From: Octopus sinensis
Taxonomy: Eukaryota
Assembly (NCBI RefSeq): GCF_006345805.1
Contig: NW_021823842.1
Location: 1-20,810, forward strand
Length of the DNA: 20,810 nucleotides
Direction of reading: 5' to 3'
Position numbers and translations under genes: made by a program. This document shows, piece by piece, positions 2,595 through 20,466 of the stretch. Each line of letters starts with the position of its first letter. The stretch's first letter is position 1. The notes beneath the pieces are model-generated. The model was not told where the DNA came from and ran no database searches. It saw only the letters and a program-made list of their open reading frames with translations.

Positions 2595-3213
2595 ATAAGA
2601 TTCACCAAATCATCAGGTATTTATTATTTAACTGTAACATTTGTAAGTGTTGTTAATGTACTGATAAGCTACATGTTATTTTATTTTGAAATCTATATGT
2701 AAATTTATTTATATGTCTACAGTTAAACTAAATGTCAGTCTGTTTCTACATTCATTGTAAATCTATTTCAACACTAGCGCCCCTGAGGGTAATATTCTTT
2801 TCAGAGTAATTTACTTTGAATTGTTATTATCTCATATCCGATTAACCTGTTATTACGCAAAATGCTTCACAATTTTGGTATACATAGCCTACAGGTATTT
2901 CCTCCTAAGTTCTATATACTCTGGGAACGCATTAAAGCCCTTTTCGGGGCTACTTTATTTGAATTCTTACTATCAGATAACTAATTTCATATTATTACGT
3001 AACTGACTTCACGATTTGGGTATTCATAACTTATGGGGATTTCCTAAAAACAAGATCCTCTGTAAAACAGTTCCTTATTCTCTGTAAATGCACAAAAAAC
3101 ATTTTAAGGGCTACATACTTTGAATTGTTGTTATTAGATTAGCGAAACAATTATGAGAACGGAACCAAGGGATAAGCCCCGCTTTTCCGAGAATTTCTGT
3201 GTACATCATCTAG
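2595..3213 (+). mobile_element. Putative Helitron 3' non-coding region ending in CTAG|T
   Basis: Follows the helicase stop; CTAG at 3210-3213 is followed by T and a TA tract; the subterminal hairpin is not clearly recognisable. Confidence 0.4.
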
Positions 3214-3227
3214 TATATAATATACAC

Positions 3228-3231
<4 letters not shown>

Positions 3232-3274
<43 letters not shown>

Positions 3275-3281
3275 TATATAT
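3232..3281. repeat. (TA)n microsatellite
   Basis: Direct reading. Confidence 0.95.
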
Positions 3282-3436
3282 TAAAAATAAATATAAGAGA
3301 GTGGTCACTATATGGCTCACTCTAACACCAGTTAATCCAAAAGGTTTCAATCACAAAATACATGTTTCCCATGAAAGTCAGTACGATTGTTAGCTCACGC
3401 GGACAGGGCAAATAAAAAATACAAAAATACAGATTA

Positions 3437-3518
3437 TTTTGGGACAATTGTTTCGCTATTAATGAATTAAATGTAATTTTACTTACAAAAAAATCCACTT
3501 GTAGCTCCTCAGCCAAAA
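3437..3518 (-). ncRNA. Type I hammerhead ribozyme, unit 1 (core intact)
   Basis: Minus strand: TTTTGG-CTGAGGA-GCTA...TAGC-GAAAC-AATT-GTC-CCAAAA; predicted cleavage 3' of C at 3443. Confidence 0.85.
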
Positions 3519-3965
3519 CTATCTGGATGAAATCCACTCAATCACACGCCAGATTTTACCATAACGATAAATACGCGTGTGGTTCATTGATTACATCCGA
3601 CGTTAATTTCAAATGCCCCAACTAACAGCGCGCCAAATTTTCACGGAAAACAAATACAAGCATTTAGAAATAAATGCAGCATATTATAATTAATTAATAA
3701 GGGTGAGAGAATTAGATACTAATTAATATATATCTATTCTACACCAAGTGGCCTAGTGCTCCGAGAACCTGGATTATTATAATATTTTATAATATATTAT
3801 AATATTTTACAGAAATATAAATAAGAGTGGTCACTATATGGCTCACTCTAGCACCAGTTAATCCAAAAGGTTTCAATCACAAAAATACATGTTTCCCATG
3901 AAAGTCATACGATTGTTAGCTCAACCACGGACAGGGCAAATAAAAAATACAAAAATACCAGATTA

Positions 3966-4052
3966 TTTTGGGACAATTGTTTCGCTATTAATGAATTAAA
4001 TGTAATTTTACTTACAAAAAAAATCCACTTGTATCTGGTCCTCAGTCCAAAA
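3966..4052 (-). ncRNA. Hammerhead, unit 2 (stems I and II disrupted by small insertions)
   Basis: Plus strand GTATCTGGTCCTCAGTCCAAAA replaces the consensus GTAGCTCCTCAGCCAAAA. Confidence 0.6.
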
Positions 4053-4503
4053 CTATCTGGATGAAATCCCCTCAATCACACGCCAATATTTTACCATAAC
4101 GATAATACGCGTGTGGTTCAATTGATTACAATCCGACGTTATAATTCAAATGCCCCAACTAACAGCGCGCCAAATTTTCTGGAAAACAATACAGCATTTA
4201 GAAATAAATGCAGCATAATTATAATTAATTAATAAGGGTGAGAGAATTAGATACTAATTTAATAGTATATCTATTCTACACCAAGTGGCCTAGTGCTGCT
4301 CCGAAACCCTGGATTATTATAATATTTTATAATATATTATATATTTTTACAAAATAATATAAGAGAGTGGTCACTATATGGCTCACTCTAGCACCAGTTA
4401 ATCCAAAAGGTTTCAATCACAAAAATACATGTTTCCCATGAAAGTCAGTACGATTGTTAGCTCACACGGACAGGGCAAATAAAAATAACAAAAATACAGA
4501 TTA

Positions 4504-4583
4504 TTTTGGGACATTGTTTCGCTATTAATGAATTAAATGTAATTTTACTTACAAAAAAATCCACTTGTAGCTCCCCAGCCAAA
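4504..4583 (-). ncRNA. Hammerhead, unit 3 (core CUGGGGA, stem III loop 1 nt shorter)
   Basis: Same frame as unit 1 with A6G and a 1-nt deletion. Confidence 0.6.
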
Positions 4584-5031
4584 CTATCTGGATGAAATCC
4601 ACTCAATCACACGCCAGATTTTACCATAACGATAAATAACGCGTGTGGTTCAATTAATTACATCCGACGTTATAATTCAAATGCCCCAACTAACAGCGCG
4701 CCAAATTTTCACGGAAAACAAATACAGCATTTAGAAATAAATGCAGCATAATTATAATTAATAATAAGGGTGAGAGAATTAGATACTAATTTAATAGTAT
4801 ATCTATTCTACACCAAGTGGCCTAGTGCTCCGAGAACCTGGATTATTATAATATTTTATAATATATTATAATATTTTTACAAAATAATATAAGAGAGTGG
4901 TCACTATATGGCTCACTCTAGCACCAGTTAATCCAAAAGGTTTCAATCACAAAAATACATGTTCCCATGAAAGTCAGTACGATTGTTAGCTCACACGGAC
5001 AGGGCATAAAAAATAACAAAAATACAGATTA

Positions 5032-5111
5032 TTTTGGGACAATTGTTTCGCTATTATGAATAAATGTAATTTTACTTACAAAAAAATCCACTTGTAGCTC
5101 CTCAGGCCAAA
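5032..5111 (-). ncRNA. Hammerhead, unit 4 (core intact, 1-nt insertion at stem I)
   Basis: Plus strand CTCCTCAGGCCAAAC versus consensus CTCCTCAGCCAAAAC. Confidence 0.65.
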
Positions 5112-5562
5112 CTATCTGGATGAAATCCACTCAACAATCACACGCCAGATTTTACCATAACGATAATACGCGTGTGGTTCAATTGATTACATCCGACGTT
5201 ATAATTCAAATGCCCCAACTAACAGCGCGCCCAATTTTCACGGAAAACAAATACAGCATTAGAAATAAATGCAGCATATTATAATTAATTAATAAGGGTG
5301 AGAGAATTAGATACTATTTAATAGTATATCTATTCTACACCAAGTGGCCTAGTGCTCCGAGAAACCTGGATTATTATAATATTTTATAATATATTATAAT
5401 ATTTTTACAAAATAAATATAAGAGAGTGGTCACTATATGGCTCACTCTAGCACCAGTTATCCAAAAGGTTTCAATCACAAAAATACATGTTTCCCATGAA
5501 AGTCAGTACGATTGTTAGCTCACACGGACAGGGCAAATAAAAAATAACAAAAATACAGATTA

Positions 5563-5643
5563 TTTTGGGACAATTGTTTCGCTATAATGATTTAAATGTA
5601 ATTTTACTTACAAAAAAATCCACTTGTAGCTCCTCAGCCAAAA
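5563..5643 (-). ncRNA. Type I hammerhead ribozyme, unit 5 (core intact)
   Basis: All core nucleotides and stems I-III present; C17 at 5569. Confidence 0.85.
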
Positions 5644-6004
5644 CTATCTGGATGAAATCCACTCAATCACACGCCAGATTTTACCATAACGATAAACGCG
5701 TGTGGTTCACTTGATTACATCAGACGTTATAATTCAAATGCCCCAACAAACAGCGCGCCAAATTTTCACGGAAAACAAATACAGCATTTAGAAATAAATG
5801 CAGCATAATTATAATTAATTAATAATAGGGTGAGAGAATTATGCTGCATTTATTTCTAAATGCTGTATTTGTTTTCCGTGAAAATTTGCGCGCTGTAAGT
5901 TGGGGCATTTGAATTATAACGTCGGATGTAATCAATTGAACCACACGCGTATTTATCGTTATGGTAAAATCTGGCGTGTGATTGAGTGGATTTCATCCAG
6001 ATAG

Positions 6005-6085
6005 TTTTGGCTGAGGAGCTACAAGTGGATTTTTTTGTAAGTAAAATTACATTTAATTCATTATAGCGAAACAATTGTCCCAAAA
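6005..6085 (+). ncRNA. Type I hammerhead ribozyme, inverted unit 6 (core intact)
   Basis: TTTTGG 6005-6010, CTGAGGA 6011-6017, GCTA 6018-6021, TAGC 6064-6067, GAAAC 6068-6072, AATT, GTC 6077-6079, CCAAAA 6080-6085. Confidence 0.87.
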
Positions 6086-6533
6086 TAATCTGTATTTTTG
6101 TTATTTTTTATTTGCCCTGTCCGTGTGAGCTAACAATCGTACTGACTTTCATGGGAAACATGTATTTTTGTGATTGAAACCTTTTGGATTAACTGGTGCT
6201 AGAGTGAGCCATATAGTGACCACTCTCTTATATTTATTTTGTAAAAATATTATAATATATTTAAATATTATAATAATCCAGGTTTCTCGGAGCACTAGGC
6301 CACTTGGTGTAGAATAGATATACTATTAAATTAGTATCTAATTCTCTCACCCTTATTAATTATTATAATTATGCTGCATTTATTTCTAAATGCTGTATTT
6401 GTTTTCCGTGAAAATTGGCGCGCTGTGTTAGTGGGGCATTTGAATTATAACGTCGGATTAATCATTGAACCACACGCGTATTTATCGTTATGGTAAAATC
6501 TGGCGTGTGATTGAGTGGATTTCATCCAGATAG

Positions 6534-6615
6534 TTTTGGCTGAGGAGCTACAAGTGGATTTTTTTGTAAGTAAAATTACATTTAATTCATTAATAGCGAA
6601 ACAATTGTCCCAAAA
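6534..6615 (+). ncRNA. Type I hammerhead ribozyme, inverted unit 7 (core intact)
   Basis: Same motif; GTC at 6607-6609, 530 nt after the unit 6 site. Confidence 0.87.
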
Positions 6616-6894
6616 TAATCTGTATTTTTGTTATTTTTTATTTGCCCTGTCCGTGTGAGCTAACAATCGTACTGACTTTCATGGGAAACATGTATTTTTG
6701 TGATTGAAACCTTTTGGATTAACTGTGCTAGAGTGAGCCATATAGTGACCACTCTCTTATATTTATTTTGTAAAAATATTATAATATTTATAAATATTAT
6801 AATAATCCAGGTTTCTCGGAGCACTAGGCCACTTGGTGTAGAATAGATATACTATTAAATTAGTATCTAATTCTCTCACCCTTATTAATTAATT

Positions 6895-6949
6895 ATATAT
6901 ATATATATATATATATACATCCATATATACATAAATATATATATATATT

Positions 6950-6994
<45 letters not shown>
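6895..6994. repeat. (TA)n/(TG)n compound microsatellite
   Basis: Direct reading. Confidence 0.95.
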
Positions 6995-6995
<1 letters not shown>

Positions 6996-7300
6996 GAGGC
7001 GCAATGGCCCAGTGGTTAGGGCAGCGGACTCGCGGTCCTGTGATCGCGGTTTCGATTCCCAGACCGGGCGTTGTGAGTGTTTATTGAGCGAAAACACCTA
7101 AAAGCTCCACGAGGCTCCGGCAGGGGGTGGTAGCGATCCCTGCCGTACTCTTTCACCACTCTTTCTCCCACTCTTTCTTCTGTTGGCCTGCTCGCTTAGC
7201 CAGCGGGGTGGCGTCATTCGAAGGCTAAAACAATGCGAACGCATTGTGACCAGTGATGTGTAACTACATCTGATGGACTGATTGGTCACGTGATCACGTG
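6995..7300 (+). mobile_element. tRNA-derived SINE family B, full-length
   Basis: A-box TGGCCCAGTGG and B-box GGTTTCGATTCCC, followed by a non-tRNA body shared with 155-406. Confidence 0.85.
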
Positions 7301-7325
7301 ATATATATATATATATATATATAAT

Positions 7326-7372
<47 letters not shown>
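7301..7372. repeat. (TA)n microsatellite
   Basis: Direct reading. Confidence 0.9.
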
Positions 7373-7373
<1 letters not shown>

Positions 7374-7709
7374 ATGCGTATACGTGCACGTATTTTTATT
7401 TATCTTAGCACTTGAATGCATTCGCTTATTTCTCTTTTTCCGGTATATTTTTCTCCTTAAAATTCTTTCAGTTTCTCGATGAGACTATTTGAAGTATACA
7501 CATTTTTGAAGTGCTCCTTCAATTGTAATTTTCAATCGAACTTTCGAGAATGAATTGTAATTTACTCTGTATAAAGAAACAAAACGCGACACTTGAAGTT
7601 AGTTTGTTAAGTGGCACGCGCACAACTCTCCACAATTCACTGAGTTTCGTAAATTTCTACCGAATAAAAATAATAAATAAACAATAAAATAATTAATTAT
7701 ATACTTACA

Positions 7710-9930: not shown

Positions 9931-10156
9931 TATTTCTTTACTACCCACAAGGGGCTAAACACAGAGGGGACAAACAAGGATAGACAAACGGATTAAGTCG
10001 ATTACATCGACTCCAGTGCGTAAATGGTACTTAATTTATCGACCCCGAAAGGATGAAAGGCAAAGTCCACCTCGGCGGAATTTGAACTCAGAACATAACG
10101 GCAGACGAAATACGGTGCGCATTTCGCCCGGCGTGCTAACGTTTCTGCCAGCTCGC
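9931..10156 (-). mobile_element. SINE family A
   Basis: Full-length reverse-complement match to 17367-17589. Confidence 0.9.
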
Positions 10157-14464: not shown

Positions 14465-14594
14465 TATATATATATATATTTATATATATCACGGTGATAT
14501 ACATATATATGTATATATAATATGCATATATATATATGTGTATATATATATATATATGCATATATATATATGTATATATATATGTATATATAGG

Positions 14595-14628
<34 letters not shown>

Positions 14629-14718
14629 TATAATATGTATATATATATATGTATATATAGGTAATATATATATATATATAATATATATATATATATTATA
14701 TATATATATATATATATA
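14465..14718. repeat. Long imperfect (TA)n tract
   Basis: Direct reading. Confidence 0.95.
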
Positions 14719-14868
14719 CAAAAAGCAATAAAGATTCAAGTTAATTTAAATGAATTTACTTGAATATGGTACCTAACTTAGATGCACCAAAAAAAAACTA
14801 TACTGTTTTAACAATACAGTAATGTGGGGTGATTATAAGCGAGAAAGAAGCAAAAGAATGGATAGGTC

Positions 14869-14957
14869 TTTAGTACAATCGTTTCATACAAGGACAGGCT
14901 TTATTAAAAGTTGTAAAAATTACAGCATATAAATGTGTCCCGTACTCATCAGCTAAA
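14869..14957 (-). ncRNA. Type I hammerhead ribozyme, second family (core intact)
   Basis: Minus strand: TTTAG-CTGATGA-GTACGGGACA...TGTCCT-T-GTAT-GAAAC-GATT-GTA-CTAAA; cleavage triplet GUA; G10.1 pairs with U. Confidence 0.78.
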
Positions 14958-15027
14958 ATACATGTGAGTTCTCTAGACATCCTAGTGGTTAGCCTTAACC
15001 ACTAGGATGTCTAGGAACTCACATGTA

Positions 15028-15117
15028 TTTTAGCTGATGTGTACGGACACATTTATATGCTGTAATTTTTACAACTTTTAATAAAGCCTGTCCTTGTATG
15101 AAACGATTGTACTAAAA
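15028..15117 (+). ncRNA. Hammerhead second family, mirror copy with A9U (CTGATGT)
   Basis: TTTTAG 15028-15033, CTGATGT 15034-15040, GAAAC 15100-15104, GTA 15109-15111, CTAAAA 15112-15117. Confidence 0.65.
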
Positions 15118-15149
15118 AACCTATCCATTCTTGTTGCTTCTTTCTCGCG

Positions 15150-15167
15150 TATATATATAATATATAT

Positions 15168-15229
<62 letters not shown>

Positions 15230-15262
15230 GTATGTATATATATATGTATATATTTATATATA
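15150..15262. repeat. (TA)n/(TATG)n microsatellite
   Basis: Direct reading. Confidence 0.95.
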
Positions 15263-16177: not shown

Positions 16178-17100
16178 ATGAAGGCGCATAGCTCAGTAGT
16201 TAGAGCGTCGGCTTCACAAACATGAGGTAACGAATTCGATTCTCAGACCGGGCTGTGTTGTGTTCTTGAGCACGACACTTTATTTCATGTTGCTCCATTT
16301 CACTCATCTGCAGAAATTAGTTGCGACACCAATGGTGCTAAGTTGTATCGGCCTTTGCGTTTCCCTTGTATAACATCTGTAGTATGGAGAGGGGAGTTTA
16401 GTATGCATGGACGATTGCTGGTTTTCCATAAAGAACCCTGGCAAGAATTGTACTTCTGAGGGGAACGTTTTAGATGCAATCCCATGGTCATTCAACACCG
16501 AAGTGGAATCTTTACATTTTCCCCATACATGTAAAGGTGTGGAGAGGTGAGGCGGGTATGCATGTGTGACTGCTGGTCTTCCATAAGCAACCTTACTCGG
16601 ACTTGTTCCTTGGAGGGGAACATTCCAGGTGCAATCCCATGGTCAGTCATGACCAAAGAGGGTATTTACCCTTTACTCTATGTACATATAATGGTGTAGA
16701 GAGGTGAGACTGATATGCATGGGTGACTGCTGGTCTTCCATGAAAAGGCTGCGAGCTGGCAGAAACGTGGGCACGCCGGGCGAAATGCTTACCGGTATTT
16801 CGCCTGCCGTTACGTTCTGAGTTCAAATTCCGCCGCGGTCGACTTTGCCTTTCATCCTTTCGGGATCGATAAATTAAGTACCAGTTACGCACTGGGGTCA
16901 ATCTAATCGACTTAATCCTTTTATTTGTCCTTGTTCGTCCCCTCTATGTTTAGGCCACCCCCCCCCCCACATGTGGGAAATAAATATGCTGGTCTTCCAT
17001 AAACAATCTTGCCCGGTCTAGTTCCTTGGAGGGGAACTTTCTAGGTGCTATTCCATAGTCATTCATGACCGAAGCGTGGTCTTTACCTCTTGTCCTTTAC
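16178..17100 (+). mobile_element. tRNA-derived SINE (family D) with three ~155-bp tandem tail units
   Basis: A-box TAGCTCAGTAG, B-box-like ATTCGATTC, CORE-like TTCTTGAGCA.GACACTT; tail marker T(G/A)GAGAGG at 16385, 16540, 16697. Confidence 0.75.
16747..16986 (+). mobile_element. SINE family A nested in the third family D tail unit
   Basis: TGCTGGTCTTCCAT duplicated at 16728-16741 and 16987-17000 (TSD). Confidence 0.85.
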
Positions 17101-17366: not shown

Positions 17367-17589
17367 GGCGGCGAGCTGGCAGAATCGCCGGGCGAAATGC
17401 GTAGCCGTATTTCGTCTGCCGTTACGTTCCGGGTTCAAATTCCGCCGAGGTCGACTTTGCCTTTCATCCGTTCGGGGTTGATAAATTAAGTACCAATTAC
17501 GCATTGGGGTCGATGTAATCGACTTAATCCGTTTGTCTGTCCTTGTTTGTCCCCTCTGTGTTTAGCCCCTTGTGCGTAGTAAAGAAATA
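17367..17589 (+). mobile_element. SINE family A
   Basis: Full head-to-tail match to other copies. Confidence 0.9.
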
Positions 17590-20241: not shown

Positions 20242-20466
20242 TATTCTTTACTACCCACGAAGGGCTAAACACAGAGAGGACAAACAAAGACAGACAAACG
20301 GATCAAGTCGATTATATCGACGCCAGGGCGTAACTGGTACTTATTTAATCGACCCCGAAAGGATGAAAGGCACAGTCGACCTCGGCAGAATTTGAACTCA
20401 GAACGTAGCGGCAGACGAAATACTGCTTAGATTTTCGCCTGGCGTGCAGACGTTTCTGCCAGCTCG
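20242..20466 (-). mobile_element. SINE family A
   Basis: Reverse-complement match to other copies. Confidence 0.88.

Follow-up and report, generated by a model that had tools for sequence, protein, structure and literature searches.

The stretch of DNA considered here, 20,810 nucleotides of Octopus sinensis (NCBI RefSeq assembly GCF_006345805.1, contig NW_021823842.1, positions 1 to 20,810 of the forward strand; hereafter the window), carries at 3274-6895 an array of seven units of ≈ 530 bp, each of which contains the frame of a type I hammerhead ribozyme (HHR). An earlier sequence-only reading of this DNA had proposed a retrozyme, a proposal which is supported at the level of sequence by the presence of one type I HHR per unit, the lack of long terminal repeats (LTRs), the non-coding nature of the repeat, its low GC content and a self-paired monomer. 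Quite probably, a retrozyme family that is non-autonomous and of the non-LTR type, with a single type I HHR in each unit of ≈ 530 bp, has inserted into the genome here. Metazoan retrozymes are tandem repeats of low GC content that carry type I HHRs and are devoid of an LTR, a primer-binding site (PBS) and a polypurine tract (PPT); they are expressed as circular RNAs (circRNAs), with Penelope-like elements (PLEs) as their suspected mobilisers, and they have been documented in many invertebrates, including molluscs (mussel) (PMC7229834).

The locus had been described as a tandem array. The repeat units are real, but their layout is a different one, in which five units with a minus-strand HHR adjoin, head-to-head, two units with a plus-strand HHR. 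A repeat search returned direct-repeat spacings of 526-540 bp over 3274-5835 and of 529-530 bp over 5836-6895, together with long inverted repeats that pair the first of these segments with the second; Tandem Repeats Finder (TRF) was blind to the array because the longest period that it considered was 500. The layout can be summarized as follows:

3232-3281, no strand: (TA)25 microsatellite, adjoining the 3' end of the left block.
3274-5836, minus strand: left block, with the HHR-sense RNA running from 5836 (5') to 3274 (3'); it consists of a 5' partial unit, four complete monomers counted from cleavage site to cleavage site (5568-5038, 5037-4510, 4509-3972 and 3971-3443) and a 169-nt 3' partial unit.
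5790-5857, no strand: inversion centre, with perfect arms of 21 nt (5790-5810 and 5837-5857) around a 26-nt loop (5811-5836).
5837-6895, plus strand: right block, inverted with respect to the left block; it consists of a 5' partial unit (to 6079), the complete monomer 6080-6609 and a 286-nt 3' partial unit.
6894-6966, no strand: (TA)36 microsatellite, adjoining the 3' end of the right block.

The left and right blocks thus meet with their 5' ends at the inversion centre, 26 nt out of register, and their 3' ends face outward, each adjoining a (TA)n tract. Both outer ends of the array are out of phase with cleavage and fall within UA-rich patches of the unit, 169 and 286 nt past the cleavage site. 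Pairwise identity between units ranges from 90 to 98.6%, and many of the differences are 1-nt indels in homopolymers. The flanks at 2600-3231 and 6967-7600 were considered as degenerate units and rejected, as only AT-rich noise was aligned.

The frames TTTTGGGAC (minus strand) and GTCCCAAAA (plus strand) were used to locate C17, the nucleotide at the predicted cleavage site, in all seven units. This search found the type I frame in each unit, as had been claimed, and placed C17 at 3443, 3972, 4510, 5038 and 5569 on the minus strand and at 6079 and 6609 on the plus strand, exactly where the sequence-only reading had predicted its seven cleavage sites with a spacing of 528-538 nt; the monomers measured from cleavage to cleavage are 529, 538, 528, 531 and 530 nt long. 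That reading had also regarded the first, fifth, sixth and seventh units as intact, and on this point a copy-by-copy check of base pairing and a generic HHR descriptor agree with it:

3436-3519, minus strand: HHR copy A1, intact, C17 at 3443 (descriptor, pair table).
3965-4053, minus strand: HHR copy A2, degenerate, with a C.C opposition at the base of stem II and a 4-nt insertion; an extra A sits between helix I and the core.
4503-4584, minus strand: HHR copy A3, degenerate, with the core CUGGGGA (A6 to G), a shortened helix I and a 3-nt loop III.
5031-5112, minus strand: HHR copy A4, impaired in helix I, which is shifted by an indel, with C.C at 1.1/2.1; intact core.
5562-5644, minus strand: HHR copy A5, intact, C17 at 5569 (descriptor, pair table).
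6004-6086, plus strand: HHR copy A6, intact, cleavage after 6079 (Rfam, descriptor, pair table).
6080-6609, plus strand: monomer of 530 nt bracketed by two intact HHRs, the only such case among the five complete monomers.
6533-6616, plus strand: HHR copy A7, intact, cleavage after 6609 (descriptor, pair table).

The RNA of the intact copies reads GUUUUGG-CUGAGGA-GCUA, followed by the long stem-loop II, then UAGC-GAAAC-AAUU-GUC and, past the predicted cleavage site, CCAAAAU. All 11 invariant core bases are in place, as are G10.1-C11.1, A15.1-U16.1 and the GUC triplet. Helix I is open, with the 5' and 3' ends of the ribozyme located in it (type I), and comprises 7 bp, an A.A mismatch and another 5 bp, and helix II is a hairpin in three tiers, of 4 bp (GCUA/UAGC), 8 bp and 5 bp. 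Stem-loop II is long, with 50-51 nt between A9 and G12, and helix III is formed by AC/GU only, with AAUU as its loop. The succession CUGAGGA...GAAA...GUC is present in A1, A5, A6 and A7, and also in A4. The differences that inactivate the ribozyme in A3 and A4 are included among the 1-nt homopolymer indels, a pattern typical of long-read assembly errors, and more HHR copies may be intact in the real genome than in the assembly.

An isolated 13-mer, TAGCGAAACAATT, is located on the plus strand at 3140-3152, ≈ 120 bp to the left of the array, with GCTA ≈ 30 nt upstream. It corresponds to the 3' half of the HHR (3' strand of stem II, GAAA and helix III), and with no extended similarity to the unit around it, it represents either a chance match or a very old remnant. 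At the inversion centre (5753-5893), sub-gathering Rfam E-value matches to MIR6140, mir-559, MIR7502, mir-4524 and mir-759 were obtained on both strands; microRNA (miRNA) genes were rejected at this position, the matches being far under the gathering scores and produced by the long hairpin at the centre. A read-through transcript across the locus would form double-stranded RNA on the kilobase scale.

The generic descriptor, which demands a helix I of at least 4 bp, a helix II of at least 3 bp, helix III and UH, returned five matches in the window, namely the four intact array copies and a further one at 14958-14868 (minus strand), compared with an average of 0.003 per window for 300 shuffles that preserved the dinucleotides. 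The pattern CTGANGA..GAAAC matched seven times, with 0.19 matches expected. Viral and metagenome contigs were scanned with a pattern made of the core plus the base of stem II, CTGANGAGCTA-N(30-55)-TAGCGAAAC; each of the 66 matches was without helices I and III, and they serve as a negative control. As relatives of the unit these 66 sequences were rejected, since they have no similarity to it and lack both helices, and they were regarded as chance matches. The Rfam hammerhead search that the sequence-only reading had put forward as a check gave a divided answer: nothing was found at the gathering score, yet Hammerhead_1 (RF00163) aligned over its full length (model 1-45) at 6005-6085 with 26.5 bits and E = 6e-5 on a 116-nt slice. 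An Rfam E-value search over 4.2 kb gave no hammerhead, only the spurious miRNA-model matches at the inversion centre. The insertion of ≈ 40 nt in loop II probably explains the Rfam shortfall. A rare HHR motif occurs twice independently in the window, and for this reason a chance origin is untenable; the HHR of the array is genuine.

Helix III together with its AAUU loop forms a perfect palindrome, ACAAUUGU, with a self-duplex energy of -7.8 kcal/mol, which the Rfam alignment places on the palindromic helix III of the model, ACGCGCGU. The HHR-compatible fold lies 1.7 kcal/mol above the minimum free energy (MFE). Type I HHRs of amphibians (newt/axolotl) are known to have a very weak helix III with a palindromic tetraloop and to need dimers for efficient cleavage (PMC7229834), and for the cricket satellite pDo500 both a single-hammerhead and a double-hammerhead mode of cleavage, the latter a hybrid of two HHR sequences, were proposed (PMC2837043). 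Because helix III of the octopus ribozyme comprises just 2 bp and carries the palindromic AAUU loop, two HHRs probably pair via ACAAUUGU/ACAAUUGU and, by analogy, would act as a double hammerhead.

For the monomer 6080-6609, the linear MFE amounts to -143.8 kcal/mol (z = -5.9), a stability reached by 0 of 100 shuffles, and its antisense gives z = -5.0; folded as a circle, it reaches -138.5 kcal/mol with 67.5% of the bases paired. The MFE structure of this monomer contains both helix I and the stem II hairpin of the HHR, consistent with published retrozyme circles, which leave the ribozyme free to fold. Three hairpins named in the earlier reading were recovered both in the sequence and in the MFE fold. 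The GC content of the units is 0.30-0.33, and they are without LTRs. The claim that the unit has no open reading frame (ORF) holds in practice: the longest unit ORFs encode 71-75 amino acids (aa), the one of 75 aa had no homologue among 5.8 billion proteins, and no long ORF is located inside or beside the array.

The descriptor match outside the array belongs to a second hammerhead element, referred to as locus B, which consists of two copies:

14720-14996, minus strand: element B1, with an intact HHR at 14958-14868; its 3' end adjoins (TA)n at 14465-14718.
14997-15153, plus strand: element B2, an inverted copy of B1 placed head-to-head with it, ≈ 96% identical over ≈ 155 nt.

The HHR of B1 reads UUUUAG-CUGAUGA-GUACGGGACA..UGUCCUUGUAU-GAAAC-GAUU-GUA and, beyond the predicted cleavage site, CUAAAG; it aligns across the full Rfam Hammerhead_1 model with 16.8 bits, and its helix III octamer, ACGAUUGU, self-pairs through G.U wobbles. 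In B2 the HHR (15030-15119, plus strand) is inactivated by the core sequence CUGAUGU. The 3' end of B2 adjoins (TA)n at 15150-15262, the endpoint being the position where B1 reads UUAUAA, and the 5' ends of B1 and B2 meet around a loop of ≈ 3 nt. Outside the ribozyme frame the second element has no sequence in common with the 530-bp unit, and homology between the array and locus B was rejected, the local alignment score of 24 comparing with 22.8 +/- 2.9 for shuffles. The ribozymes of the two loci have the same architecture; all invariant core bases are kept, and the stems are altered by paired changes, with a G-C pair of helix I replaced by A-U and three of the first four stem II pairs differing on both sides.

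Both loci therefore consist of head-to-head copies with their 3' ends pointing outward and (TA)n at each outer end. Perfect (TA)n of at least 6 repeats makes up 3.35% of the window, and by a rough estimate the chance that both elements lie inside such tracts is about one in a thousand. Insertions of PLEs are known to comprise partial tandems, often with an adjacent inverted and 5'-truncated copy, and to prefer microsatellites, including (TA)n (Craig et al. 2021, PMC8557442). As far as sequence features go, both loci of the window match this signature.

A life cycle can be sketched by analogy with the retrozymes of coral, mussel and axolotl (PMC7229834). Transcription of the array would yield a multimeric RNA, which would be cleaved by the HHRs after GUC, probably in the double-hammerhead form, and the resulting 530-nt monomer would be circularised by a host ligase of the tRNA type. 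The reverse transcriptase/endonuclease of a PLE would then copy the RNA at a nicked (TA)n microsatellite into tandem cDNA, and fold-back (snap-back) of the nascent cDNA would create the inverted block. The decayed left block would release at best a tetramer of ≈ 2.1 kb (5568-3443). From the near symmetry of both centres, with offsets of 26 nt and ≈ 3 nt, we infer that cDNA fold-back is favoured over two independent priming events, and independent twin priming was ranked below fold-back as the origin of the inversions on the same grounds.

Taken a step further, both loci may tentatively be regarded as footprints of retrozyme integration, in which the PLE machinery would have primed internally on circular or multimeric RNA at nicked (TA)n, followed by rolling-circle reverse transcription and snap-back of the cDNA. 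This possibility, which we hold to be a minority one, is suggested because the 3' ends run outward into (TA)n, out of phase with cleavage, and the 5' ends lie in a near-symmetric fold-back. If it is true, junctions across octopus assemblies would make the hypothetical mechanism of retrozyme mobilisation testable directly from sequence. Immediately to the right of the array, between (TA)36(TG)15 and (AT)37, lies a further element at 6997-7300 that resembles a short interspersed element (SINE) and has a tRNA-like head (ARAGORN: no tRNA); a second copy, 90% identical, is found at 155-402. The right end of this SINE-like element adjoins (AT)n, so that retroelement tails, as opposed to pre-existing targets, may account for some of the (TA)n tracts.

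Several observations weigh against the retrozyme assignment and the fold-back connected with it. None of the Rfam families reached its gathering score, and the best HHR score (26.5 bits, against a gathering threshold of 34) emerges only on slices of ≈ 120 nt. Three of the seven ribozymes are damaged, and the array bears no sign of purifying selection. Neither a PLE reverse transcriptase (RT) nor a GIY-YIG domain is present among the ten longest ORFs of the window (Pfam: Pif1_2B only), and no further copy of the unit was found in the window, in the viral and metagenome collections or, with spurious unit ORFs as queries, in the protein database. The mirror-image units are not the closest ones, L1 and R1 being 94.1% identical compared with 98.6% for R1 and R2, contrary to what is expected from a simple and recent fold-back; fold-back could be reconciled with the unit similarities only by invoking later divergence, assembly noise or gene conversion. 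Lastly, the 1-nt homopolymer indels between units could be assembly errors.

Some of these points suit an ordinary minisatellite or satellite multiplied as DNA, through unequal exchange or replication slippage, in which the HHR would be a relic and the inversion a palindromic DNA duplication. HHRs damaged in three of seven units, differences of 1.4-10% between units without a clear gradient, mirrored units that are not the most similar and the lack of other copies in the collections searched (viral, metagenome, protein) would all be in line with such an origin, and HHR satellites of ≈ 500 bp, pDo500 for example, were long called simply satellite DNA (PMC2837043). Amplification of this kind leaves unexplained, however, why an unrelated second HHR element also has head-to-head blocks, outward 3' ends and (TA)n at both ends, and neither the z-score of the monomer (-5.9) nor its free HHR is expected of a neutral AT-rich repeat. 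The HHR satellites which have been examined, from newt, cricket, coral and mussel, are moreover transcribed and processed (PMC7229834, PMC2837043). An ordinary satellite is accordingly considered unlikely.

Still less likely is an origin from the pseudo-LTR (pLTR) part of an autonomous PLE, left as a partial tandem after deletion of the coding body, without a separate non-autonomous family. It is attractive in so far as type I HHRs whose helix III is minimal are found in the pLTRs of PLEs, elements which also occur in tandem and inverted arrangements at microsatellites (PMC8557442; Cervera & de la Pena 2014 as cited there), and as Xenopus retrozymes are homologous to PLE pLTRs (bioRxiv 10.64898/2026.07.22.740005). 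On the other hand, seven complete or partial units are present with no ORF between them, an RT or GIY-YIG signal was not found in the ten longest ORFs of the window, and the unit ORF is without homologues. The distinction is also partly semantic, since retrozymes have been proposed to derive from pLTRs.

The head-to-head inversion could in principle be a fold-back chimera of long-read assembly that conceals a simple tandem at the true locus, as might be suspected from the perfect 21-nt arms around a short loop at 5790-5857 and from the homopolymer indels between units, which suggest noisy long reads. The arms are unequal, however (2.56 kb compared with 1.06 kb), differ by 2-9% and enter different unique flanks, and locus B independently shows the same topology with diverged arms and different 3' extents, which renders a chimera very improbable. 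The notion that the HHR frame arose by chance in an AT-rich repeat and was multiplied sevenfold along with it can appeal to the sub-gathering Rfam scores and to the fact that the array copies are not independent, but it has next to no probability in view of a descriptor false-positive rate of 0.003 per window, an independent second HHR in the window, the joint presence of 11 invariant core bases and G10.1-C11.1 with a helix I of 12 bp, a helix II in three tiers and a helix III that is palindromic, and the finding that 0 of 66 database pattern matches had helices I and III.

The window as a whole is AT-rich, with a high density of microsatellites and of SINE-like repeats. At 1177-2544 lies a decayed Helitron-type Pif1 helicase (Pfam Pif1_2B); it is frame-shifted and interrupted by a duplicated SINE-like insert of 184 bp at 1941-2307, and the best protein matches of its fragments are from Octopus bimaculoides, O. 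sinensis and O. vulgaris, with 67-75% identity. The SINE-like family of ≈ 180 bp has six copies in the window, which are 85-91% identical and distributed over both strands, at these positions:

1941-2307, SINE-like copies.
9931-10110, SINE-like copy.
16798-16956, SINE-like copy.
17410-17589, SINE-like copy.
20244-20420, SINE-like copy.

A 157-bp tandem duplication (1.8 copies, 80% matches by TRF) is located at 16458-16741.

With the retrozyme assignment preferred, the question is what it adds. A literature search returned no description of hammerheads or retrozymes in octopus, nor of any cephalopod family. The octopus array is a new family within the already known class of metazoan retrozymes, and not a new kind of element; a cephalopod family is thereby added to retrozymes known already from cnidarians, bivalves, insects, amphibians and fish. 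At default thresholds the Rfam Hammerhead_1 model misses HHRs with a long stem-loop II, and such families are probably under-counted. Beyond this, two unrelated HHR elements within 20 kb have a topology in common, namely head-to-head copies, (TA)n at both ends and ends off the cleavage phase, which provides a concrete sequence handle on the machinery that mobilises animal retrozymes and on the form of RNA from which it does so.

Among the known systems, the LTR retrozymes of plants share with the octopus array its non-autonomous nature, its delimitation by HHRs and the proposed circRNA intermediate (PMC4918200). The plant elements carry type III HHRs in their LTRs, a PBS and a PPT, and 4-bp target-site duplications, and their mobilisation is of the Gypsy type (PMC4918200); none of these features was seen in the octopus element, whose HHR is of type I and which has no LTRs. 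Similar in size is the satellite pDo500 of the cave cricket Dolichopoda, likewise a repeat of ≈ 500 bp with one HHR, the multimeric transcripts of which are cut to monomers (PMC2837043), and the HHRs of amphibian satellites have the same weak helix III with a palindromic tetraloop that ACAAUUGU implies for the array (PMC7229834). There is, however, no sequence similarity between the array and newt satellite 2, Schistosoma Sm-alpha or pDo500, and these HHR satellites form large blocks, whereas the octopus array is an insertion of seven units between unique flanks.

The PLEs resemble the octopus loci in their type I HHR with minimal helix III, their partial tandems, the adjacent inverted and 5'-truncated copy and insertion at microsatellites of the (TA)n type. 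They differ in that a PLE has a pLTR on each side of a coding body, while the array consists of full repeated units and has no RT/GIY-YIG ORF. Penelope-like families have been annotated in the genome of Octopus vulgaris (PMC13282606).

The metazoan non-LTR retrozymes, finally, agree with the array in that the repeats run head-to-tail and carry a single type I HHR per unit, in low GC content and the lack of LTR, PBS, PPT and ORF (no search aimed at the PBS and PPT was made in the array), in a self-paired monomer that leaves the HHR free to fold, and in a 2-bp helix III with a tetraloop, as in invertebrate HHRs. PLEs may likewise co-occur with the array, Penelope-like families being annotated in the host genus. 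Retrozyme consensus sequences measure 51-972 bp, with at most 7 units in 75% of the families (bioRxiv 10.64898/2026.07.22.740005), and both the unit length of 530 bp and the copy number of 7 fall inside these ranges. The array differs in that its stem-loop II is unusually long, which probably pushes its Rfam score below threshold, and its inverted blocks with (TA)n flanks form an architecture that is unmentioned in PMC7229834 and bioRxiv 10.64898/2026.07.22.740005. Every property of metazoan non-LTR retrozymes that can be tested on sequence is found in the array, and its reading as a retrozyme is further supported by the helix III palindrome and by an insertion architecture like that of PLEs.

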